Virus record (IMG/VR): IMGVR_UViG_3300035181_000357
Span: 124,001 to 188,000 of that record
DNA: 64,000 nt
Strand: one strand, 5' to 3'
Shown piece after piece: positions 48,914 to 64,000 of the stretch (its first letter is position 1; the number at the start of each line of letters is the position of its first letter). Position numbers and translations under genes: made by a program. The notes under the pieces are model-generated. The model ran no database searches, was not told the DNA's origin, and saw only the letters and a list, made by a program, of their open reading frames with translations.

Positions 48914-50434
48914 ATGAGATTCATAAACGAATACACCCAGAAATCAGCTAATACCCCAGAGATCAAGGTCTTCACTGATAAGAGCACATATCACAAGCTA
49001 GCGAAAGTAGCTTTGACTGGTGTACTAAACGGTCAGTACTACAAATCTGAGGACAAGATAGTCAGTGAACTAACTTCTGTAGTTGAGAAGATGGCAATCG
49101 AAGATCCTATCTTCTTGCTAAAGGCAGCTAAGGCTAGCCGTGCCCTCAACATGAAGTTGTTCCCTAAGCTAGCTGTCGCTGCTGTCCTATCGAAGTCACA
49201 GGACAAGTCTGTAGATCCAGAGATCGAAAAGATTCTGGCTACCTACAACCCAAACCAGCTTTTAGAGTTCATCTTGATGTTGAAGAACCGTCAGTATGGT
49301 TCTGGCCTGGGGTCTAGATCACAGAAGCTCGTCGCTCGTGGACTAGCTCGTGTCTCAGCTAAGCGTCTAGAGGATTGGACTCTGTCCGAAGGTTCTAGCC
49401 TTAACAGAATCCTACGTCTCGTTCACCCAACACTTAATCCAGTCGTCAAGTACGTCCTGAAGGCTGATAAGGAAGCAGAGTGGACTGATCGTCAGCGTGC
49501 ACTCGAGACCATCAAGATGCTTCAGCAGAAGAGAGAAGGGGATTACGAGGCTGAGGTAGCAGCATTAATCAAAGTCTACAATCTTCCATTCAATTCTTTG
49601 AAGGGTGTAATCTCAGCTACCAACAAAGCTGCCTGGGACGAGATCGCAGAGAACATGTCTGTGATCCAGCTCCTAATCAACCTCAAGTCCCTTGACAATA
49701 TGGGTGTGATGACCACTTCTAGACTTCGTCGTCTTCTAGATGCCAAGTTTGTAAAGGGCAAGACCAGGATTCTTCCTTTTGACATCATGCGGCCAATGGC
49801 TAATGCAGATGCTAAGTACAGGGATGTCTTGATCGAGTTCTTGGAGAAGCTAGTCCTAGATCCTATTCCATCCCTTGAGGGTAAGACCGTCGGTCTAATC
49901 TTTGACGGTAGTGGATCAATGGGTGGTCCTAACTATGCTGGTAGCCCATGGATGACTTCTATGGCCTTGGGTCTGCCTCTTATGTCCAGCTGTAATGTAG
50001 CTGAGTCCATCATCTATTCTACCACTGTCCGAAAGGCTCCAGAGTTCAGAAAGTATGATGGTGCAGAGAACTTCAAGCGTATCTCCGAGGCATTCCCATC
50101 TGGTGGAACCAACACCGATATGGCGATTGACCACTTCACCAAGAACAACATCGTTGTTGATGTTCTTGTTCTCATCACTGATGAGCAGCAGAACGGCTAC
50201 AGGTGTGGTGGATTCCAGAACGCCTGGGCAAGATACAGAAAGCTTCACCCAGAAGCAGAACTACTTATCGTAAACGCTACTCCATATGAGTGGCACATGA
50301 CAGAGACTGGAACCAATGGTGTCACCATCGTCCAGACTCTGACCCCAGCTGTTTACCAGATGATCCAGTACCAGGGTCAGGATATGGTAGACGTCATTTC
50401 CAACATGGAACTAGGAGACAGCAATGAAGATTAA
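48914..50434 (+). CDS. Ro60/TROVE-like ribonucleoprotein with C-terminal vWA domain
   Basis: Helical N-terminus, QLLINLKSL, MIDAS DGSGSM, GGTNT, LITDEQ. Confidence 0.7.
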   Translation: MRFINEYTQKSANTPEIKVFTDKSTYHKLAKVALTGVLNGQYYKSEDKIVSELTSVVEKMAIEDPIFLLKAAKASRALNMKLFPKLAVAAVLSKSQDKSVDPEIEKILATYNPNQLLEFILMLKNRQYGSGLGSRSQKLVARGLARVSAKRLEDWTLSEGSSLNRILRLVHPTLNPVVKYVLKADKEAEWTDRQRALETIKMLQQKREGDYEAEVAALIKVYNLPFNSLKGVISATNKAAWDEIAENMSVIQLLINLKSLDNMGVMTTSRLRRLLDAKFVKGKTRILPFDIMRPMANADAKYRDVLIEFLEKLVLDPIPSLEGKTVGLIFDGSGSMGGPNYAGSPWMTSMALGLPLMSSCNVAESIIYSTTVRKAPEFRKYDGAENFKRISEAFPSGGTNTDMAIDHFTKNNIVVDVLVLITDEQQNGYRCGGFQNAWARYRKLHPEAELLIVNATPYEWHMTETGTNGVTIVQTLTPAVYQMIQYQGQDMVDVISNMELGDSNED

Positions 50435-55991: not shown

Positions 55992-56246
55992 ATGTTCCAT
56001 GGAAGTACCAGGAGTGATTTTGCTCTGAGTATGATTCAGGCTCGAGAGATGAACGTGGATCCTGAGATCATGCGATTGCTCGAAGATTTCGAAGCTGCGT
56101 ACGAACGAGCTTTCAAGTTTGCGATCGAACTCAAGAAACATAAGAATTTTGAAGACATCGGTGAACTACTCCGGCTTGAACTTTTCGGAGACAAAGAAGC
56201 TATCGATGATCTCTATAAAGAAATCAAAAACCGAAAGAGGGTGTAG
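55992..56246 (+). CDS. Hypothetical protein
   Basis: 84 aa. Confidence 0.55.
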   Translation: MFHGSTRSDFALSMIQAREMNVDPEIMRLLEDFEAAYERAFKFAIELKKHKNFEDIGELLRLELFGDKEAIDDLYKEIKNRKRV

Positions 56247-56247
56247 T

Positions 56248-56742
56248 TTGAAGAAGTCGCATAAGGTCATCATCCTGGCTGGTATCCCTGGTTCTGGAAA
56301 ATCCACCTATATTGAAGGTCTGATGAAGACTTTCAGTGAAGACATCTCGGTATCTATCGTGTCTGCCGATCACTATTTCATCAAGTACGGTACGTACAAG
56401 TATGTGGCACATGATATCCCACATGCTCACAAGCAGTGTCAGAACAGGTTCTCTGACGCTCTGGACATGGACGTTGACGTTATCTTTGTAGACAACACCA
56501 ACATCCTGAGTAAGCATCGCAAGCCATACGTCCAGGAGGCTCTGGATTGTGGCTATGAGGTTGAGATTCATGCTCTTCCTGCAGATGTCGAGGCTAGTGC
56601 AAGTAGGAACATTCACGGTGTGGACCTGGATGTCTGTCAGCGAATGTTCGATTCTTTCGATCTGGAGTTTGGAACTATCTACGACCATAAGCGTCAGAAG
56701 ATTGGGACTATCACCAAGGAACAGGTAGGCTTGAGTGGCTAA
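56248..56742 (+). CDS. Polynucleotide 5'-kinase-like P-loop protein (AAA_33 type), no phosphatase domain
   Basis: ILAGIPGSGKST, VSADHY, VDNTN, RNIHGV; TTG start after AGAGG (track start 56119). Confidence 0.8.
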   Translation: MKKSHKVIILAGIPGSGKSTYIEGLMKTFSEDISVSIVSADHYFIKYGTYKYVAHDIPHAHKQCQNRFSDALDMDVDVIFVDNTNILSKHRKPYVQEALDCGYEVEIHALPADVEASASRNIHGVDLDVCQRMFDSFDLEFGTIYDHKRQKIGTITKEQVGLSG

Positions 56743-57130
56743 ACAGCTATCATGTGGTGTCCTGGTTACACACAAGAATTCACTTCTTCTATGTCATGTA
56801 ACTGGGACTTACAATCGTTGGGATATTCCTAAAGGAATGCCTAATGATGGAGAAGATCACGTAGCTGCTGCTGTTCGAGAACTCAACGAAGAAACAGGGA
56901 TTGTACTCGGTGTTAACTACAGAGAGTTGGGTTACACCGAGTACACCAAGACGAAGGATTTGTTCCTTCTCTACCATGAAGGTCTGTACGAAGTATCGGA
57001 TATGACCTGTTTGTCGTTCTTTGAAGATGATCGTCCAGAGATGGATGGTTTTAGGTATTTTGATTTTAATGAAATTGTTGGCCACGTCACACCTAATCTG
57101 TATAAGGTATTGACTAAGTTCTTAGGGTGA
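56735..57130 (+). CDS. Nudix hydrolase
   Basis: PKG...GEDHVAAAVRELNEETGI Nudix box. Confidence 0.9.
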   Translation: MAKQLSCGVLVTHKNSLLLCHVTGTYNRWDIPKGMPNDGEDHVAAAVRELNEETGIVLGVNYRELGYTEYTKTKDLFLLYHEGLYEVSDMTCLSFFEDDRPEMDGFRYFDFNEIVGHVTPNLYKVLTKFLG

Positions 57131-57133
57131 GTT

Positions 57134-58225
57134 ATGGAAAGAAAGCTAGTAACTATTAGAGAGATCGCTGCAGTGAATCCTATCCCCGATGCAGATGCCA
57201 TCGAGGTGGTAACTGTAGATGGATGGAAAGTGGTCTCCAAGAAAAATGAGTTCAAGCCAGGAGATCTCTGCCTATACTTCGAGATCGACAGCTTCCTACC
57301 TATCAAGCCAGAGTATGAGTTTCTGCGTAAGAGTAGCTACAAGAAGGTCATCGATGGTACGGAAGGATTCAGACTCAAGACCGTAAAACTGCGTGGTCAG
57401 ATCAGCCAAGGTCTGGTTATGCCTATCTCAGAAGATATTCTGAAGACTCTGGCTCCAGTAGCTAGTTCGGATCTCAGGACTCTTCTGGACCAAGATCTCA
57501 CCGAGTTGTTTGGTGTGACCAAGTGGGAGCCACCTCTGTCTGCCTGTCTTTCTGGGTTGGTTAAGGGTAACTTCCCATCACATACTCCGAAGTCTGGCCA
57601 GGAGCGTATCCAGAATCTGAAATACTTCTTCGAACTCTATAAAGATGAAGAGTTCGAGATGAGTCTGAAACTCGATGGAAGTTCATGCACTATGTATTTG
57701 GATCGAGAGGATGTCTTTGGAGTCTGTTCACGTAATCTGGATCTGAAACCAGACGAGAGCAATAGCTTCTGGAAACAAGCCTATATTCATGGTGTTGAAG
57801 ACAGACTCAAGATAATTCATTCTGTATCTGGGTTGAATCTCAGTATCCAAGCTGAATTGGTTGGGGAAGGAATTCAGGAGAACCACGAGAAGATCAAGGG
57901 CCAAGATCTGTATGTCTTCAATATCTGGGACCAACACCTCGGACGATCCTTGACCCCATCTGAACGACATGCTACACTGGATGCTCTAAACGATCTCCAG
58001 GTCTTAGGTTCCAAGCCACTTAAACATGTCCCTGTAATTGGGTATGAGAAGGTCTTCACCAAGTATCAGACACTAGAAGCTCTCTTTGAATTCGTGGAAA
58101 GCCTAGCTGGGATGAATCCTGGTGTAATCCTCGAAGGCGTAGTGTTCAAGAGTGTAAGACCTATAAATGGTAGCATTGTAAGCTTTAAGATCGTCAGCAA
58201 TAAGTACCTTCTTTCCAAGAAATAA
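57134..58225 (+). CDS. ATP-dependent RNA ligase, Rnl2-related DRB0094-type
   Basis: N-terminal RKLVTIREI...DAIE, motif I KLDGSS, AELVGEGIQ, FNIW, EGVVFK, SFKIVSNKYL. Confidence 0.9.
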   Translation: MERKLVTIREIAAVNPIPDADAIEVVTVDGWKVVSKKNEFKPGDLCLYFEIDSFLPIKPEYEFLRKSSYKKVIDGTEGFRLKTVKLRGQISQGLVMPISEDILKTLAPVASSDLRTLLDQDLTELFGVTKWEPPLSACLSGLVKGNFPSHTPKSGQERIQNLKYFFELYKDEEFEMSLKLDGSSCTMYLDREDVFGVCSRNLDLKPDESNSFWKQAYIHGVEDRLKIIHSVSGLNLSIQAELVGEGIQENHEKIKGQDLYVFNIWDQHLGRSLTPSERHATLDALNDLQVLGSKPLKHVPVIGYEKVFTKYQTLEALFEFVESLAGMNPGVILEGVVFKSVRPINGSIVSFKIVSNKYLLSKK

Positions 58226-58596: not shown

Positions 58597-58712
58597 GATC
58601 CCATAGCTCAGTTGGACAGAGCAACAGCCTTATCGCACTCCTGACCAGGTGGGTTTGGAACTGCATGGCTCTAAGCTGTAGGTCGCTGGTTCGAGCCCAG
58701 CTGGGATCACCA
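58597..58712 (+). tRNA. tRNA-Arg(UCU) interrupted by 39-nt insertion in the anticodon loop
   Basis: GATCCCA/TGGGATC acceptor, A20, ACAGC/GCTGT stem, T arm, ACCA; removing 58631-58669 restores loop CTTCTAA. Confidence 0.8.
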
Positions 58713-60443: not shown

Positions 60444-60781
60444 GGGCCTGACAAGGTTTCGACAGGTTGTTAGCTTGGGATTGCGGTGCAGGGACTGGTT
60501 GATCAGCAGGCCAGTATAAAAGCAGATCAAACTTTAATTGCCGAGCCACAGCTCGCACTAGCAGCTTAAACACTGCTACGAGGAACCGCGAGAGGACAGT
60601 AGCGGGGAATCGTCACCACCGTCCTAGTTTCTACTAAGAGTTCGGGTAAGTAGGAGCGAAACTACGCGATCAAACGATAGTAGGCTGTCAGTCGCCGACC
60701 TATCGAGACCAGACTGACTAACCCTGTGAATGACTTCAATACAACTCTTCTTGGACGTGGGTTCGAATCCCACCAGGTCCA
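60444..60781 (+). ncRNA. ssrA: tmRNA with tag (A)AEPQLALAA
   Basis: GGGCCTG/CAGGTCC acceptor with G3-U70, TTCGAC D-loop analogue, T arm; tag ORF GCC...TAA at 60540-60569. Confidence 0.95.
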
Positions 60782-60925
60782 CATCGGTAGACTTCCTAGT
60801 TCTTACGGAGAATAGGAACATGGAAGTCTACCATACAACCCTCTAAGATAATGGATGGACAAGAGGTAGGAAATTCCCTAGCGATAGGGATTAAGATCGG
60901 CGAGTGCCGATATACGGAGGTAGTT

Positions 60926-61367: not shown

Positions 61368-61454
61368 GCCGAGGTGCCAGAGTGATTGAATGGGCAGGTT
61401 TTGTAATCCTGTAGAGAAATCTCGTCATGGGTTTGAATCCCATCCTCGGCTCCA
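61368..61454 (+). tRNA. tRNA-Thr(UGU) with atypical long variable arm
   Basis: GCCGAGG/CCTCGGC acceptor, loop TTTGTAA, U31-U39 mismatch, 15-nt variable region. Confidence 0.75.
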
Positions 61455-61622
61455 ATCAAAATTTATTTCATAAAAGTTATCTTCCAGAGATTGTAGTTCG
61501 TAATTAATGAATTATGTGGTCATGGCCACGCGAATTCCCTTTGACAATTTCATAGAGATCAAGCACACGAGCTCTGCTGTAGAGTCTAACGATTCTGGCA
61601 CACATGCCGTGTGTATTTATTA

Positions 61623-61707
61623 GGTAGGGTGGACAATGGTCGTCAAGCGGCTTTGAATACCGTCGCTCCGAGAGGAGTTGCAGGTTCGAATCCTGTCCCT
61701 ACCGCCA
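61623..61707 (+). tRNA. tRNA-Ser(UGA)
   Basis: Loop TTTGAAT, C31-A39 mismatch, long variable arm, G73, CCA. Confidence 0.85.
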
Positions 61708-61716
61708 ATCTTTAAT

Positions 61717-61794
61717 GGCCCAGTACGCTAATTGGCAGATGCGGTAAGTTTCAAAAACTTGTGGTTGTCGGTTCGAATCCGACTTGGGCTACCA
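61717..61794 (+). tRNA. tRNA-Leu(CAA) with short variable loop
   Basis: Loop TTCAAAA, 5-nt variable region, A73, CCA. Confidence 0.85.
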
Positions 61795-61796
61795 AT

Positions 61797-61885
61797 GGAA
61801 GATCGGCACAGTTGGAGAGGTGCGCCAGTTTGCTAAACTGGTAGATGTAACAGTCTAGAGGGTTCGATTCCCTTATCTTCCGCCA
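61797..61885 (+). tRNA. tRNA-Ser(GCU)
   Basis: Loop TTGCTAA, long variable arm, G73, CCA. Confidence 0.95.
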
Positions 61886-62078
61886 AAGTCGTCGCTCGCA
61901 AAGCGGAGAGAGGTAAGTAAGACAGATTAATGGTCTAGAACATCCTGTCAGAGAATACCTTGTAGGTTCAAATCCTACCTTGACAACAATACGCAACGCC
62001 ATAGAAAAGCCTTCATCTTAATAGGGATGGGGGGGAAACCCTCGCTGGCTTTTCACCACTTTCGTTGCATTCTTATTA

Positions 62079-62152
62079 CGGTCACTGGCGCAGCCTGGTA
62101 GCGCACCTGCTTTGGGAGCAGGGGGTCGAGTGTTCGAATCACTCGTGGCCGA
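62079..62152 (+). tRNA. tRNA-Pro(UGG), CCA not encoded
   Basis: C1-G72, loop TTTGGGA. Confidence 0.92.
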
Positions 62153-62191
62153 CATCGTGATCTAGACTTAGGTTTAGATCACACAATATCT

Positions 62192-62268
62192 CGGGGTGAA
62201 AGTGAGCCTGGTACACGGTCTGGTTTGGAACCAGAAGATCGTCGGTTCAAATCCGACCTCCCCGACCA
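62192..62268 (+). tRNA. tRNA-Pro(UGG), second copy, A37
   Basis: Loop TTTGGAA, one acceptor mismatch, CCA. Confidence 0.88.
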
Positions 62269-62303
62269 ATATCAAACTTTATAATTATATGTAGAGGACT
62301 ATC

Positions 62304-62660
62304 ATGTTCAAAGCTAAACTACTAAAGACTGCATCAAGTCCACAATTGACTCTGGCTCAACAAGTCTATGCTCAACATAAGGCAGAGATAGATCCTAAGA
62401 TTTTCAAGGCTGCTGACTATGTAGTTGATAATGCTATCGATCTAGATTCTGAAACTGCAGATAATCATCTATTTGGTGATGCTATATTTGAGCCATGGTT
62501 TGAAGCCAGCCCAGAATATCTCAGTATGACAGAAGAATCTGGGAACGAAGATGACGAGACCGATTATATTGGTGGTGTCTGGGAACAAGTTCTGTCTACA
62601 AATCCAAAGTATAAAGATGTCGTAGCTAAATTTGCTGACATCAGAATCAATGGATATTAA
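62304..62660 (+). CDS. Acidic hypothetical protein inside the tRNA island
   Basis: 118 aa, AGAGG RBS, N-terminal MFKAKLLKTASS. Confidence 0.7.
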   Translation: MFKAKLLKTASSPQLTLAQQVYAQHKAEIDPKIFKAADYVVDNAIDLDSETADNHLFGDAIFEPWFEASPEYLSMTEESGNEDDETDYIGGVWEQVLSTNPKYKDVVAKFADIRINGY

Positions 62661-62666
62661 TATCAT

Positions 62667-62745
62667 GGAGTGCTAGGGGAGTCAGGCCGTCCCCAGTTGC
62701 TTGTCACGCAACAGATCACGGGTTCGAATCCCGTGCACTCCGCCA
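62667..62745 (+). tRNA. tRNA-Asp(GUC)
   Basis: Loop TTGTCAC, G73, CCA. Confidence 0.95.
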
Positions 62746-62865
62746 TTCTCTCTAGAAATAGAGGATCATGAGTTGGGTAGAATCCACGTCTGAGGGACGT
62801 TAGGTGTCTGCTGTGCTGCAGCGAGAAACCCCACTAGCAGACCCTGTCTCATGATCAAATATCAT

Positions 62866-62942
62866 GCTCCGTATGCTGAAGTTGTCGAGGCGTTGGTCTG
62901 CAAAACCAATCTTAGCCAGTTCAAGTCTGGCACGGAGCTCCA
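62866..62942 (+). tRNA. tRNA-Cys(GCA)
   Basis: Loop CTGCAAA, U73, CCA. Confidence 0.95.
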
Positions 62943-62959
62943 AATTCGTAATGCCCTTT

Positions 62960-63078
62960 AGAAGCTTTCATCCACTATAAGGACGTTATCGGAGGTTCGA
63001 ATCCTCCTCCCGGAACCAATATCTTATTTTTCATTCCGGGATAGCTTAGTGGCCTAAAGCACGTAAAAGAGCTTTTTT
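62960..63078 (+). ncRNA. Circularly permuted tRNA-like RNA (T arm - acceptor stem - D arm); YrlA-like Y RNA or permuted tRNA
   Basis: T arm 62991-63007, TCCCGGA+ACCA 63008-63018, 16-nt linker, TCCGGGA 63035-63041, D arm 63044-63060, terminal helix and T run. Confidence 0.75.
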
Positions 63079-63104
63079 ACTATTTTCATTGCGAAGCCTA
63101 TTAT

Positions 63105-63190
63105 GGTCCAGGAGTCCAACGGTTGAGACAGCACGCTGTTAACGTGCCGCTGTAAAAGCACATAGGGTTCAACTCCCTACTGGATCGCCA
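63105..63190 (+). tRNA. tRNA-Asn(GUU) with atypical long variable arm
   Basis: Loop CTGTTAA, 15-nt variable region with GCT/AGC stem, G73, CCA. Confidence 0.85.
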
Positions 63191-63241
63191 TCGGGTAATG
63201 ATCCCAAGAGATATATCAAAGAAGCAAATGAATTTATCCAT

Positions 63242-63329
63242 GCATCAGCGGCAGAGTTGGAGGGCTGCAACGGTCTGTAAAACCGTCGGGTTGATCCCCT
63301 AGTAGGTTCGAGTCCTACCTGATGCACCA
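63242..63329 (+). tRNA. tRNA-Tyr(GUA)
   Basis: Loop CTGTAAA, long variable arm, A73, CCA. Confidence 0.95.
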
Positions 63330-63331
63330 AA

Positions 63332-63406
63332 GTCGATAGTGGACGAGGGACGTCCGGGAGTCTTCTAAACTCCATTCTCCGGGTTCGAGTCCTGGTATCG
63401 ACACCA
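63332..63406 (+). tRNA. tRNA-Arg(UCU), uninterrupted
   Basis: Loop CTTCTAA, CCA. Confidence 0.9.
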
Positions 63407-63410
63407 ATTT

Positions 63411-63502
63411 CCCGGTGTGATGTACGGTTGCATAGGTGGCTTTATACCCCACTCGCGCCAGATTAGCGCCTTGTTAGGGTTCGACTCCCTACGCCGGGAC
63501 CA
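63411..63502 (+). tRNA. tRNA with probable UAU (Ile) anticodon and 22-nt variable arm
   Basis: CCCGGTG/CGCCGGG acceptor, GTGG/CCAC stem with C31-C39 mismatch, loop TTTATAC; alternative UUA register pairs worse. Confidence 0.65.
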
Positions 63503-63580
63503 ATTCTTGATAACGCCTTCGAATCAGGTTTCATCCATTAAATGAAAAGCCTGTTCATCCTGTTCTTCGTTATCATCCAC

Positions 63581-63654
63581 TGCGCTGTCGTCTAGTGATA
63601 AGGCAAGAGACTTTGACTCTCTGAACGTAGGTTTGATTCCTGCCAGCGTAACCA
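63581..63654 (+). tRNA. tRNA-Gln(UUG)
   Basis: U1-A72, loop CTTTGAC, CCA. Confidence 0.92.
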
Positions 63655-63776
63655 TCGATTAACTTTCTTTTGAGAGTTCATCAAAATATCATCATCAGTA
63701 TACTTCCAACCTGTTGGTAAAATAGAAGGGCTGTTGATGTTAGCACGACTGTTCGACTCAGCCTCGTGCGAAATAT

Positions 63777-63851
63777 GGGCTATAGGAATTAAAGGTTGTT
63801 CGCATGACTGAAAATCATGAGGAGGCGGTTCGATACCGTCATAGCCCACCA
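63777..63851 (+). tRNA. tRNA-Phe(GAA)
   Basis: CATGA-CTGAAAA-TCATG, CCA; weak D arm. Confidence 0.88.
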
Positions 63852-63853
63852 AC

Positions 63854-63933
63854 GTCCGGGTACGCAAATCTGGCAAAGCGACTATCCTCAGAAGGTAGTG
63901 ACTCTGTGGGTTCGACTCCCACCTCGGACACCA
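63854..63933 (+). tRNA. tRNA-Leu(CAG) with reduced (7-nt) variable region
   Basis: Loop CTCAGAA, A73, CCA. Confidence 0.9.
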
Positions 63934-63939
63934 ATCAAT

Positions 63940-64000
63940 GCAGATGTACGCTATCTGGTATCTCGGAAATCCTGAAAAGGTTGTGTTTTTAGCACACCGT
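63940..64000 (+). tRNA. Possible further tRNA (GAA anticodon, long variable arm) cut by window end
   Basis: AATC-CTGAAAA-GGTT arm then GTGT/ACAC hairpin; T arm and 3' strand outside window. Confidence 0.35.

Follow-up and report, generated by a model that had tools for sequence, protein, structure and literature searches.

In this large phage the long variable arm is found on tRNAs for Thr, Asn and Lys and on the AUA-reading tRNA(UAU), while it is missing from two tRNAs for Leu. Each of these swapped tRNAs is a member of a sequence family found in unrelated phages, in which the arm is conserved or covaries, and the acceptor ends retain the marks of the corresponding isoacceptors. Judging from the sequences, we consider it probable (about 0.6) that these are working phage tRNAs which have changed structural class with their amino-acid identity still residing with the anticodon, the long-arm tRNAs most likely still carrying the amino acid that the anticodon specifies. 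As to the reason for the arms, the leading candidate, by inference, is evasion of host defences that cut tRNAs.

Structure of the swapped tRNAs

The genes are listed in Table 1. ARAGORN gives a variable region of 15 nt for Thr(UGU) (61412-61426, UAGAGAAAUCUCGUC) and for Asn(GUU) (63148-63162, CGCUGUAAAAGCACA; discriminator G73) and of 22 nt for tRNA(UAU) (63453-63474), in agreement with the initial annotation, which had also described the Ser-like D loop of Thr(UGU) (3-bp stem, loop GAGUGAUUGAA, of the class II Ser/Leu/Tyr type) and the short arms of Leu(CAA) and Leu(CAG); all of these were recovered by ARAGORN. A further long-arm tRNA, a possible Phe at 63940, received no support: ARAGORN, run with introns permitted and a loosened threshold, did not call it, and neither did Rfam. 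The real Phe gene is the class I tRNA at 63777-63851. The fourth long-arm tRNA is Lys(CUU), which lies just beyond the window.

Table 1. Features of the tRNA cluster and its surroundings. Coordinates are those of the window, the whole stretch of 64,000 nt that was analysed (positions 124,001 to 188,000 of IMG/VR record IMGVR_UViG_3300035181_000357), unless stated otherwise.
Feature	Coordinates	Strand	Basis and remarks
P-loop kinase, AAA_33/Zeta_toxin-like	56206-56742	+	PHROGs, Pfam
NUDIX protein	56837-57130	+	PHROGs, Pfam
RNA ligase, PF09414	57134-58225	+	PHROGs, Pfam
tRNA-Thr(UGU), long variable arm	61368..61454	+	ARAGORN, 87 nt; Rfam; RNAfold
tRNA-Ser(UGA)	61623-61707	+	ARAGORN; ordinary class II
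tRNA-Leu(CAA), short 5-nt variable loop	61717..61794	+	ARAGORN, 78 nt; Rfam 52.9 bits
tRNA-Ser(GCU)	61797-61885	+	ARAGORN; ordinary class II
tRNA-Asn(GUU), long variable arm	63105..63190	+	ARAGORN, 86 nt; Rfam; RNAfold
tRNA-Tyr(GUA), ordinary class II	63242..63329	+	ARAGORN; Rfam 45 bits; internal reference for arm geometry
tRNA(UAU), AUA-reading, tRNA-Ile(tat)	63411..63502	+	ARAGORN, 92 nt; RNAfold; weak tRNA-Sec match
tRNA-Phe(gaa)	63777-63851		75 nt, class I
tRNA-Leu(CAG), short 7-nt variable loop	63854..63933	+	ARAGORN, 80 nt; Rfam 46.4 bits
tRNA-Lys(CUU), long variable arm	genome 188367-188452		86 nt; 367 nt past the window end

The Rfam tRNA model placed an 11-nt insertion in the variable region of Thr(UGU) (50.8 bits) and Asn(GUU) (40.5 bits), as it did for the phage tRNA-Tyr, and unconstrained RNAfold returned a five-arm cloverleaf as both minimum free energy and centroid structure for Thr(UGU), Asn(GUU), Lys(CUU) and tRNA(UAU) (4/4); the three independent methods concur on the arms. 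Better alternative folds with normal arms had been named as the result that would speak against the swap; none appeared with unconstrained RNAfold for any of the four, and hence the long arms stand. The long-arm cloverleaves are intact, with canonical T loops, U33 and A37, and CCA is encoded in all these tRNAs as in the neighbouring tRNA genes; a mismatch at 31:39 is present in the UAU and Thr tRNAs. The arm of tRNA(UAU) consists of a 4-bp stem (GCGC/GCGC) and the 7-nt loop CAGAUUA (63459-63465), with GAU at 63461-63463. Its D arm is compact (5 bp and the tetraloop CGGU), its discriminator is A73 and its best Rfam match is tRNA-Sec, at 30.8 bits and thus under the family threshold of 47. The arm tips of the Thr, Asn and Lys tRNAs are small GNRA-like loops without anticodon mimicry.

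Leu(CAA) displays a Leu-type D loop (A14, A15, G18G19), U48 and A73, and its D arm is closest to that of Leu(CAG), which likewise has a Leu-type D loop and A73. The other class II tRNAs of the phage, namely Leu(taa), Leu(gag), Leu(tag), three Ser and one Tyr, are ordinary. Ser(UGA) and Ser(GCU), which flank the short Leu(CAA), have G1-C72, G2-C71, G73, arm stems of 4-5 bp and, 3' of the arm, a single unpaired base.

Recurrence and conservation of the arms

We scanned IMG/VR by pattern for long-arm Asn(GUU) tRNAs and, without specifying the arm itself, for long-arm UAU tRNAs, with 80 loci listed in each case; both surveys being pattern-selected, the frequencies given here hold among the matches listed and are not population estimates. 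ARAGORN called a tRNA-Asn of 82-94 nt in 54 of the 80 Asn loci listed (at least 54 distinct long-arm tRNA-Asn), and long-arm UAU tRNAs, again at least 54 distinct ones, were found in 54 of the 80 UAU loci listed. Long-arm tRNAs for Cys, Ile(GAU), Met, Thr(UGU), His, Trp and Lys(CUU) occur in these survey loci as well; in the loci chosen by UAU, long-arm Asn (1/16), Thr (2/23) and Lys (1/30) are rare among the matches listed. Short-arm Leu tRNAs account for 26 of 71 Leu tRNAs among the matches of the Asn survey and for 26 of 57 among those of the UAU survey. Such genes are also present, without comment, in the GenBank phages S-CRM01 and CcrColossus: homologs of tRNA(UAU) occur in S-CRM01 and IMG/VR contigs, short-arm Leu(CAA) in S-CRM01 and many IMG/VR loci, and Leu(CAG) has a homolog in a jumbo-phage contig (L057). 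Long-arm tRNAs of normally class I isoacceptors and short-arm Leu tRNAs thus recur in IMG/VR, S-CRM01 and CcrColossus, and the feature is not private to the present phage. The premise that long arms in bacteria are restricted to Leu, Ser, Tyr and Sec was too strong, in view of allo-tRNAs (PMC5389517) and of the many phage and few cellular cases in the surveys. We found no published description of the swapped arms or of the GAU arm loop in the literature.

The arms are at least as conserved as the acceptor strands, with identities to homologs of 12/15 against 9/14 for Thr, 13/15 against 5/14 for Asn and 10/14 against 10/14 for Lys. The Thr(UGU) arm core AGAGAAAUCU is identical in its homolog at L077. 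The Asn values refer to the homolog at L061, where, as in L039, a long-arm and a class I Asn(GUU) are adjacent. In the Asn tRNA of a relative (run X5) the sole change is C4>U, which keeps the pair, and the flank has indels; close relatives carrying the cluster are 99.9-100% identical and carry no covariation information. Across the long-arm families all helices covary, and the UAU family is a 7/5 cloverleaf in which pair 49:65 is standard in every member (48 of 48) and is formed by four different pair types.

Conservation is sharpest in the UAU arm. Among the 54 long-arm UAU tRNAs listed, 50 form a variable-region hairpin with a 7-nt loop, 46 place GAU at positions 3-5 of that loop and 53 have A73; the loop consensus in these matches is YAGAUUA, with GAU central, on 22 distinct covarying stems, typically with 2 unpaired bases before and 5-6 after. 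No such loop was present in the 296 other long arms among the matches listed (77 Ser, 70 Leu, 53 Asn, 31 Tyr and others). These observations favour an alternative that is possible, if on the whole unlikely, namely that the arms are not a shield but a handle by which a synthetase, a modification enzyme or a phage factor binds or identifies the tRNA. In its sharpest case, tRNA(UAU), the arm may mimic an anticodon stem-loop and show the GAU of the major tRNA-Ile, which could make the host IleRS accept a U34 tRNA reading AUA. Host IleRS normally requires G34 or lysidine-34, its C-terminal domain being the part that reads G34, and a UAU anticodon is rare among natural tRNA-Ile (PMC13752280); besides, the tip of the tRNA-Leu long arm is read by archaeal LeuRS, a paralog of IleRS (PMC9976931), and engineered variable-arm pseudo-anticodons have been used to recruit synthetases (PMC7590224). 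However, a 4-bp arm cannot reach the normal anticodon pocket with the acceptor end in the active site, so another binding mode would be required, and loop positions 2 and 6 are A and U where a real anticodon loop has U33 and A37. Since the Thr, Asn and Lys loops are without mimicry, a handle based on GAU cannot cover the whole set. Within the preferred reading of reshaped tRNAs that keep their identity, the UAU arm loop may be a second handle for IleRS, its anticodon-like GAU being recognised by a protein that reads the Ile anticodon.

We consider it quite unlikely that the arms are a neutral, functionless by-product of tRNA gene turnover, in clusters that duplicate and remould genes so that a class II body comes to bear another anticodon and another discriminator, or the arm of a Leu gene is lost, the products being tolerated because the relevant synthetases are indifferent to it. 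The isoacceptors with long arms (Thr, Asn, Lys, Ile, Cys, Met, Trp, His) do correspond to synthetases relying on anticodon and discriminator, and E. coli LeuRS requires A73 and the elbow, with the arm dispensable (PMC9976931); several long-arm tRNAs have class II-like D arms, and Lys(CUU) has acceptor and D stems similar to those of Tyr(GUA) (stem identity 0.63). Yet the arms are kept in distant phages, by sequence or by compensatory change, no less than the main stems, and the UAU loop is near-invariant across divergent members of the matches listed (46/54). Moreover, Thr(UGU) has its closest match in stem sequence in the class I Thr(GGU) of the same phage, at an identity of 0.66 that exceeds the 99th percentile across all pairs, and not in any of the phage's class II tRNAs, and long-arm and class I Asn copies are retained side by side.

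Amino-acid identity of the long-arm tRNAs

Acceptor ends were read by identity rules established in model bacteria (PMC9976931), which may not be those of the phage's host. Thr(UGU) has G1-C72, C2-G71 and U73, in common with the phage's class I Thr(GGU) and with every other long-arm phage Thr tRNA listed (6/6), and lacks the G2-C71 and G73 of tRNA-Ser. Asn(GUU) has G1-C72, G2-U71 and G73, in partial overlap with the Ser set; G73 is the normal AsnRS determinant (PMC9976931). Among the matches listed, long-arm and short-arm phage tRNAs respectively have Asn G73 in 42/54 and 21/24, Cys U73 in 11/11 and 15/15, Thr C2-G71 in 6/6 and 27/35, Thr U73 in 6/6 and 31/35, Ile A73 in 11/11 and 32/32, and His C73 in 4/5 and 21/23; A73 is the own-isoacceptor mark of the long-arm Ile and Lys tRNAs. 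Phage Ser tRNAs have G1-C72 and G2-C71, with exactly one unpaired base 3' of the arm in 37 of the 42 listed, while 40 of the 54 long-arm Asn tRNAs listed have 3-4. The arms in question, with stems of 3-4 bp and 3-5 unpaired bases on the 3' side, have a geometry unlike that of tRNA-Ser. The codons concerned are heavily used (AUA makes up 27% of the codons for Ile, AAG 61% of those for Lys and ACA 29% of those for Thr), so a proteome-wide substitution would be costly. The phage record yielded no tRNA-Asn other than the long-arm Asn(GUU), none of class I, and no second AUA reader.

These data bear on the proposal of the initial annotation that the tRNAs deliberately place Ser at Asn and Thr codons. 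In its wider form, deliberate or tolerated, the long arm would recruit SerRS, TyrRS or LeuRS and bring Ser, Tyr or Leu to Thr, Asn, Lys and Ile codons, for protein diversification or host harm. SerRS is indeed anticodon-blind and charges long-arm allo-tRNAs with non-Ser anticodons, including in E. coli (PMC5389517, PMC7609411), those with G73 or U73 being charged regardless of anticodon (PMC5389517); the G73 and G1-C72 of Asn(GUU) and the U73 and Ser-like D arm of Thr(UGU) would suit it. The anticodon of the partly Tyr-like Lys(CUU) is one base from CUA, that of the amber suppressor accepted by TyrRS, and in at least one cellular MAG (L322) a GUU anticodon does sit on a tRNA with a genuine Ser body. 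tRNA(UAU) combines A73 with a long arm, as does the nematode nev-tRNA-Ile(UAU), which is reportedly charged with Leu. Over dozens of independent long-arm tRNAs, however, the end marks track the amino acid of the anticodon and not Ser; G2-C71, near-universal in bacterial tRNA-Ser, is missing from Thr, Ile and Lys and is replaced by G-U in Asn, and the arms are unlike those of all the phage's own Ser tRNAs. With a sole tRNA-Asn and abundant AAY, AAG, ACA and AUA codons, mistranslation would reach every phage protein. Altogether, the own-isoacceptor end marks, the non-Ser arm geometry and the heavy codon use disfavour deliberate Ser missense, and missense in any form appears improbable. Pseudogenes or non-decoding tRNA-like RNAs (nuclease decoys, primers, regulatory RNAs) are more improbable still: allo-tRNA(UAU) species, once recoded to CUA, failed to suppress amber codons in E. 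coli and non-translational roles were proposed (Mukai et al., PMC5389517), and the 31:39 mismatches and the sub-threshold Rfam score of tRNA(UAU) point the same way, but the cloverleaves are intact and covary within families, Thr and Asn score comfortably above the Rfam tRNA threshold, and the codons are relied on with no other tRNA-Asn or AUA reader found in the record.

Host defence and known systems

The other proposal of the initial annotation was that reshaped bodies escape host tRNases while keeping anticodon-based identity; the retained identity fits all the sequence evidence, and the escape we infer more weakly. Thr(UGU), Asn(GUU), Lys(CUU) and tRNA(UAU) are 7/5 cloverleaves with an extra variable-arm hairpin, and the two Leu tRNAs have lost the arm and kept the Leu-type D loop, U48 and A73. 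Host synthetases would charge them with Thr, Asn, Lys, Ile and Leu, reading mainly the anticodon, discriminator and first acceptor pairs or, in the case of Leu, A73 and the elbow. Streptomyces coelicolor has a natural type I tRNA-Leu(CAA) that its own LeuRS charges and the E. coli enzyme rejects (PMC6614811), so the short-arm Leu tRNAs could lack activity in certain hosts. The phage might keep the altered hinge and variable region because host defence nucleases, which cut beside or within it, would act poorly on the phage copies; these could then keep feeding heavily used codons once host tRNAs are destroyed. PARIS AriB cleaves three tRNAs of E. coli, Lys(UUU), Thr(UGU) and Asn(GUU), with the cut falling between positions 40 and 41, and infection is rescued by the T5 copies of precisely these tRNAs (PMC12409363). 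Retron-Eco7 and Septu PtuAB cut tRNA-Tyr within its variable loop, and the longer variable loop of SP15 tRNA-Tyr is required for evasion (PMC12673091, PMC13096335). Counting against a role in defence, Thr(UGU) and Lys(CUU) retain the U36-A-A-U-C recognised by AriB, so any protection must come from shape alone.

The tRNA-Lys/Thr/Asn of T5 (against PARIS AriB) and the tRNA-Tyr of T5 and SP15 (against Retron-Eco7 PtuAB) are the nearest in kind: they include phage versions of isoacceptors that are also affected here (Thr UGU, Asn GUU, Lys), keep cognate identity and differ from the host near the cut site, by a longer variable loop in tRNA-Tyr (PMC12409363, PMC12673091, PMC10264068). RNA-repair genes (kinase, NUDIX, ligase) likewise adjoin the cluster here, directly upstream. 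Those cases, however, amount to point substitutions within the anticodon stem-loop or to a difference of 5 nt in length in an already class II tRNA, whereas here a whole hairpin arm sits on normally class I isoacceptors and is missing from Leu. The type I tRNA-Leu of S. coelicolor and animal mitochondria resembles the short-arm Leu tRNAs in its Leu anticodon (CAA in S. coelicolor), A73, short loop and coexistence with class II Leu isoacceptors in one compartment (PMC6614811); the present ones differ in being phage-encoded and recurrent in the tRNA clusters of many phages. Allo-tRNAs (Mukai et al. 2017, PMC5389517) share the long arm on non-Ser anticodons, with UAU the commonest, and are metagenome-derived and in part phage-borne; the abundant allo-tRNA(UAU) group and the UAU family here both have a compact Sec-like D arm (stem and tetraloop). 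By their published description, allo-tRNAs have 8/4 or 9/3 acceptor/T stems and mostly G73 or U73 (Ser identity), against 7/5 and A73 in the UAU family. With tRNA-Sec (Rfam RF01852) the UAU tRNA shares the long arm and compact D arm. Apart from its low score, it differs in having anticodon UAU and not UCA, 7/5 and not 8/5 stems, and A73 and not G73. The nev- and nov-tRNAs of Hamashima et al. are said to be eukaryotic (nematode) nuclear genes, class II-shaped with class I anticodons, notably Ile(UAU) as in the phage, and to be charged with Leu, hence missense tRNAs. We know of no GAU arm loop among them, and, unlike them, the phage tRNAs keep acceptor marks that match the anticodon.

Variable arms in the phage tRNA cluster

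A long variable arm belongs, by the textbook rule, to the tRNAs for Leu, Ser, Tyr and Sec; the present phage breaks this rule both ways, as do many other phage tRNA clusters. The source record, of which the window covers bases 124001-188000, is a 210,611-base IMG/VR virus from a JGI metagenome of sediment or microbial mat, with an estimated completeness of 69%, and represents a jumbo-type phage encoding a baseplate wedge protein, rIIA and NAMPT. ARAGORN places 40 tRNA genes and a tmRNA gene between window position 58.6 kb and a point 7.6 kb beyond the window end. A tRNA counted as class II if its variable region exceeded 10 nt and folded into a stem-loop lying between anticodon arm and T arm. 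Such a region, with a hairpin of 3-4 bp, is found in the tRNAs Thr(UGU) and Asn(GUU), in the AUA-reading tRNA(UAU) and in tRNA-Lys(CUU) (ARAGORN, Infernal, RNAfold), and it is missing from tRNA-Leu(CAA) and tRNA-Leu(CAG). The initial annotation had reported long arms on the Thr, Asn and UAU tRNAs and short variable loops on these two Leu tRNAs; ARAGORN bears out the length of each, together with the G73 of tRNA-Asn, while a 'possible Phe at 63940' finds no support from relaxed-threshold ARAGORN or from Rfam.

Both tRNA-Thr (50.8 bits) and tRNA-Asn (40.5 bits) pass the Rfam tRNA model, which places their extra bases in the variable region as it does for phage tRNA-Tyr. When folded by RNAfold without constraints, every long-arm tRNA keeps a five-arm cloverleaf as its MFE and centroid structure, and no better fold with a normal arm appeared. 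Shifting the UAU and Thr tRNAs to another anticodon register (UUA, AUA or GUA) leaves no paired stem. We hold with high confidence that the structures are real and recurrent.

Features of the tRNA cluster and its surroundings (window positions unless stated; variable regions by ARAGORN for the first five entries)
Feature	Position	Length (nt)	Variable region (nt)	Remark
tRNA-Thr(UGU)	61368-61454	87	15	long arm
tRNA-Asn(GUU)	63105-63190	86	15	long arm; G73
tRNA(UAU)	63411-63502	92	22	long arm
tRNA-Leu(CAA)	61717-61794	78	5	short arm
tRNA-Leu(CAG)	63854-63933	80	7	short arm
tRNA-Lys(CUU)	367 nt past window end	86	14	fourth long-arm case
Arm of tRNA(UAU)	63455-63469			GCGC-CAGAUUA-GCGC
tmRNA	60444-60782			phage-encoded; Rfam 93.4 bits; tag peptide AEPQLALAA; mid tRNA cluster
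P-loop kinase, NUDIX protein, RNA ligase	56206-58225			immediately upstream of tRNA cluster
Ro60-like RNA-binding protein	48914-50434			farther upstream
tRNA-like gene	58597-58712			Rfam tRNA 58.1 bits
T-arm or minihelix-like element	61897-61987			between Ser(GCU) and Pro(UGG)
tRNA-Pro(UGG), two copies	62079-62268			
tRNA halves	62975-63058			3' half first
Amber-suppressor tRNA (CUA)	genome 192253-192328 (locus L003, 4253-4328)	76		outside window, same cluster

Taken with the Ro60-like protein, the kinase, NUDIX protein and RNA ligase resemble a module for RNA repair and quality control. The idea that the phage encodes a synthetase to partner the odd tRNAs was dropped, since the 210-kb record (69% complete) has no match to PF00587, PF00152 or PF00133, covering the Ser/Thr/Pro, Asp/Asn/Lys and Ile/Leu/Val families. 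In searches for relatives, the RNA ligase retrieved from IMG/VR and JGI metagenomes only homologs of 29-56% identity without tRNAs nearby, rIIA retrieved one 89%-identical contig that stops short of the cluster, and the tmRNA tag pattern matched an unrelated phage. A 118-aa ORF within the cluster is an orphan. Exact-protein look-up returned only sister-sample contigs of 99.9-100% identity; neither an exact 27-mer of the Thr tRNA nor BLAST of this tRNA against GenBank phages gave a match.

Other elements of the cluster are also unusual. The tRNA-like gene carries a 39-nt insertion in its anticodon loop and is called Arg(UCU) with an 'intron' by relaxed ARAGORN; a group I intron would need far more length than this insert has, and because the RNA ligase lies 370 nt upstream, protein-catalysed splicing is conceivable. 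Elsewhere a T arm with 3' acceptor strand and ACCA (GGAGGTTCGAATCCTCC-TCCCGGA-A-CCA) is followed after 15 nt by a perfectly matching 5' acceptor strand and D arm (TCCGGGA-TA-GCTT...AAGC), and thus the 3' half of a tRNA precedes its 5' half; no anticodon arm was found for these halves, which would be either a permuted or split tRNA gene or a rearrangement scar. The minihelix-like element (GTAGGTTCAAATCCTAC) is called only by relaxed ARAGORN, which takes it for a poor Leu(UAA) bearing an insert of 12 nt. The first of the two tRNA-Pro(UGG) copies has no encoded CCA and the second has acceptor- and D-stem mismatches; metagenome depth over the first is hundreds of times above its flanks because it is so similar to cellular tRNA-Pro. 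Finally, the amber-suppressor tRNA hints at possible TAG recoding.

Amino-acid identity of the reshaped tRNAs

The initial annotation had proposed that the long arms might serve missense decoding by Ser. Ser identity depends on arm geometry, with G1-C72 and G2-C71 conserved (PMC9976931), and the set that we looked for comprised these two pairs, G73, and a long arm stem separated from the T stem by one unpaired base. None of the four long-arm tRNAs has both pairs: the first two pairs are G1-C72 and C2-G71 in Thr and Lys, G1-C72 and G2-U71 in Asn, and C1-G72 and C2-G71 in UAU; the three Ser tRNAs of the phage all start with GG. The discriminator is U73 in Thr, A73 in UAU and Lys, and G73 in Asn, where it is also an AsnRS determinant. 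Nor is the arm geometry of the Ser type, the long-arm tRNAs of the window having stems of 3-4 bp and 3-5 unpaired 3' bases. Among the matches listed in our survey, phage Ser tRNAs have G1-C72 and G2-C71, and 37 of 42 leave exactly one base unpaired on the 3' side of the arm; in 40 of 54 long-arm Asn tRNAs, 3-4 bases are unpaired there.

The cognate marks are largely in place. Asn and Lys identity lies in anticodon and discriminator, Thr identity in the first acceptor pairs and anticodon, and Ile identity in anticodon and A73 (PMC9976931). Thr(UGU) combines its anticodon with G1-C72, C2-G71 and U73, Asn carries GUU together with G73, Lys CUU together with A73, and tRNA(UAU) has the A35, U36 and A73 of Ile, the sole departure from the Ile determinants being U34 instead of G34 or lysidine-34. 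The class I sister Thr(GGU) carries the same first pairs and U73 as Thr(UGU), whose stems are nearest to it (0.66 identity, >99th percentile of all pairs). In the survey, discriminator and first pairs are common to the long- and short-arm versions of each isoacceptor among the matches listed.

Identity marks in long- and short-arm versions of phage tRNAs (survey, matches listed)
Mark	Long-arm	Short-arm
Asn G73	42/54	21/24
Cys U73	11/11	15/15
Thr C2-G71	6/6	27/35
Thr U73	6/6	31/35
Ile A73	11/11	32/32
His C73	4/5	21/23

The codons concerned are heavily used by the phage (27% of Ile codons are AUA, 61% of Lys codons are AAG and 29% of Thr codons are ACA), and no second tRNA-Asn was found in its record. 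Altogether, acceptor-end marks that follow the anticodon, an arm geometry foreign to Ser, the published identity rules and codon use make Ser missense unlikely and cognate decoding the probable function, and we hold with fairly high confidence that the long-arm tRNAs would be charged in accordance with their anticodons. Leu identity lies in A73 and the elbow and does not need the arm (PMC9976931). Leu(CAA) and Leu(CAG) retain A14, A15:U48, G18G19 and A73 as read from the sequence, so that both would fit type I tRNA-Leu by sequence criteria; in S. coelicolor, a natural short-arm tRNA-Leu(CAA) is charged (PMC6614811).

If the long-arm tRNAs are cognately charged, AsnRS, ThrRS, LysRS and IleRS would tolerate a class II body in nature, and the arms would provide a natural chassis for orthogonal tRNA design as well as a concrete and testable structural means for phage tRNAs to evade, possibly, a lengthening list of tRNA-cutting defences (PARIS, retron/Septu PtuAB, PrrC, VapC, Schlafen).

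Recurrence of the arms and the GAU loop of the UAU family

Such genes are sometimes missed in annotation and sometimes named without comment. BLAST identified in Synechococcus phage S-CRM01 an unannotated homolog of tRNA(UAU) with 78.5% identity, and all three Leu tRNAs of this phage are short-armed. In Caulobacter phage CcrColossus, the tRNAs for Trp, Lys(CUU), Asn(GUU), Cys and Met have long arms; GenBank lists the Asn gene as an 89-nt tRNA-Asn, which the genome paper passes over. Structural patterns were then run on IMG/VR and on cellular genomes, and as these scans are pattern-selected, the counts that follow speak for recurrence and not for frequency. The long-arm Asn(GUU) pattern recovered from IMG/VR at least 54 ARAGORN tRNA-Asn of 82-94 nt (54 of 80 loci among the matches listed). 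The same listed loci have long-arm Cys (11/26), Ile(GAU) (9/38) and Thr(UGU) (6/26), as well as Met, His, Trp and Lys(CUU), and short-arm Leu (26/71). The long-arm UAU pattern gave at least 54 distinct tRNAs (54 of 80 loci among the matches listed), with short-arm Leu in 26/57.

On cellular genomes the Asn pattern yielded only 10 real cases in 80 loci among the matches listed. Three of them are lone tRNA-Asn(GUU) genes with U1-A72 and G73 in Solirubrobacterales genomes (L325, L351, L352), and the shape is therefore not purely viral. The alphaproteobacterial MAG L322 carries a GUU-anticodon tRNA with a full Ser body (starting with GG, with a 5-bp arm, a single unpaired base and G73), a real candidate for missense. 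No match to the T-arm and arm pattern of the UAU family was found in 185,579 cellular species genomes. Two regularities of the window were tried and dropped: adjacency of Arg(UCU) and tRNA(UAU) is seen here and in the comparison loci L035/L036, but in 2/58 overall, and a bias of long arms to readers of A-starting codons (4/4 here, chance about 0.012, post hoc) is not pressed, the proportion being ~44% in the wider survey.

The individual tRNAs have homologs in other loci. The arm core AGAGAAAUCU of Thr(UGU) is identical in the comparison locus L077; the arm of Asn(GUU) agrees at 13/15 positions with its homolog in locus L061, as against 5/14 in the acceptor strands; and Lys(CUU) shares with its homolog in L057, a 314-kb phage contig, the D arm and the arm stem UCC/GGA. 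In a relative from the freshwater run X5, the Asn tRNA has one pair-preserving change and its flanking spacer has indels. Long-arm and class I Asn(GUU) genes are kept close together in two other phage contigs, L061 (2134-2294, 3 nt apart) and L039 (4972-5525). Conservation of the arms is no lower than that of the main helices, or else the arms covary, and neutral relics are therefore unlikely.

The UAU family has an arm of its own kind, with a 3-5 bp stem (at least 22 distinct stem sequences) preceded by 2 and followed by 5-6 unpaired bases, and a 7-nt loop of consensus Y-A-G-A-U-U-A, with which the window copy agrees. GAU stands at loop positions 3-5 in 46/54 listed members, from a scan whose pattern left the arm unspecified, whereas 296 other long arms all lack it. 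The major tRNA-Ile has GAU as its anticodon, and the triplet is placed here as an anticodon is in a 7-nt loop. As IleRS is strongly dependent on G34 or lysidine-34, and tRNA-Ile with UAU is a rarity in nature (PMC13752280), an arm offering GAU to IleRS is an attractive idea, although geometry counts against simple use of the normal IleRS anticodon pocket. Our boldest reading, to which we give a probability of about 0.3, is that the arm of a widespread phage tRNA(UAU) acts as a pseudo-anticodon stem-loop, so that IleRS of the host, or some other protein reading the Ile anticodon, would take a U34 tRNA that decodes AUA; more broadly, phages would systematically add arms (Asn, Thr, Lys, Cys, Ile) and remove them (Leu) as counter-defence against tRNA-targeting immunity. 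The GAU arm would then be the first natural anticodon mimic in a variable arm, and it bears on the old question of how AUA is read, and its tRNA charged, without lysidine.

Contigs of the metagenome runs X1 and X2 join window 63406 to 63501 and therefore omit exactly the UAU tRNA; with only 30 nt of flank at the joint and ACCAATT at both ends, this may reflect either presence/absence variation or a fault of assembly.

Host defences and known noncanonical tRNAs

The PARIS nuclease AriB cleaves three tRNAs, Lys(UUU), Thr(UGU) and Asn(GUU), its cut falling between positions 40 and 41, and infection is rescued by the copies of these three that T5 itself encodes (PMC12409363). Retron-Eco7 and Septu PtuAB cleave tRNA-Tyr within its variable loop, and evasion needs the longer variable loop of a phage tRNA-Tyr (PMC12673091, PMC13096335). 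The AriB targets are isoacceptors that recur in the long-arm set of the phage (Thr(UGU), Asn(GUU) and Lys), and RNA-repair genes adjoin the cluster here. By analogy, the arms might spare phage tRNAs from host nucleases that act beside or inside the variable region, the second explanation offered in the initial annotation. Against this, Thr(UGU) and Lys(CUU) retain the UAAUC read by AriB, and our confidence in defence as the selective reason for the arms is low to moderate.

No paper turned up in the open-access literature that describes Asn, Thr, Lys or Ile tRNAs of class II shape, or a GAU arm loop, in phages. The D arm of the UAU family is compact and Sec-like, and A73 occurs in 53/54 listed members and in the window copy. 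tRNA-Sec identity was rejected for the UAU tRNA, which scores 30.8 bits against a threshold of 47 with the Sec model (RF01852) and has the anticodon UAU rather than UCA. Allo-tRNAs share the long arm, but they mostly combine it with G73 or U73 (Ser identity), and have an acceptor/T-stem architecture of 8/4 or 9/3. RNAfold alone gives 8/4 for the window copy, whereas covariation supports 7/5: pair 49:65 is standard in 48/48 UAU-family members, with 4 pair types, and an 8:65 pair forms in only 42%. Being 7/5 and not 8/4, the family lacks the feature that defines allo-tRNAs, although it may overlap the 'allo-tRNA(UAU)' group left unexplained by Mukai et al. (PMC5389517). The nearest known kinds are noncanonical variable-arm tRNAs and defence-evading phage tRNAs.
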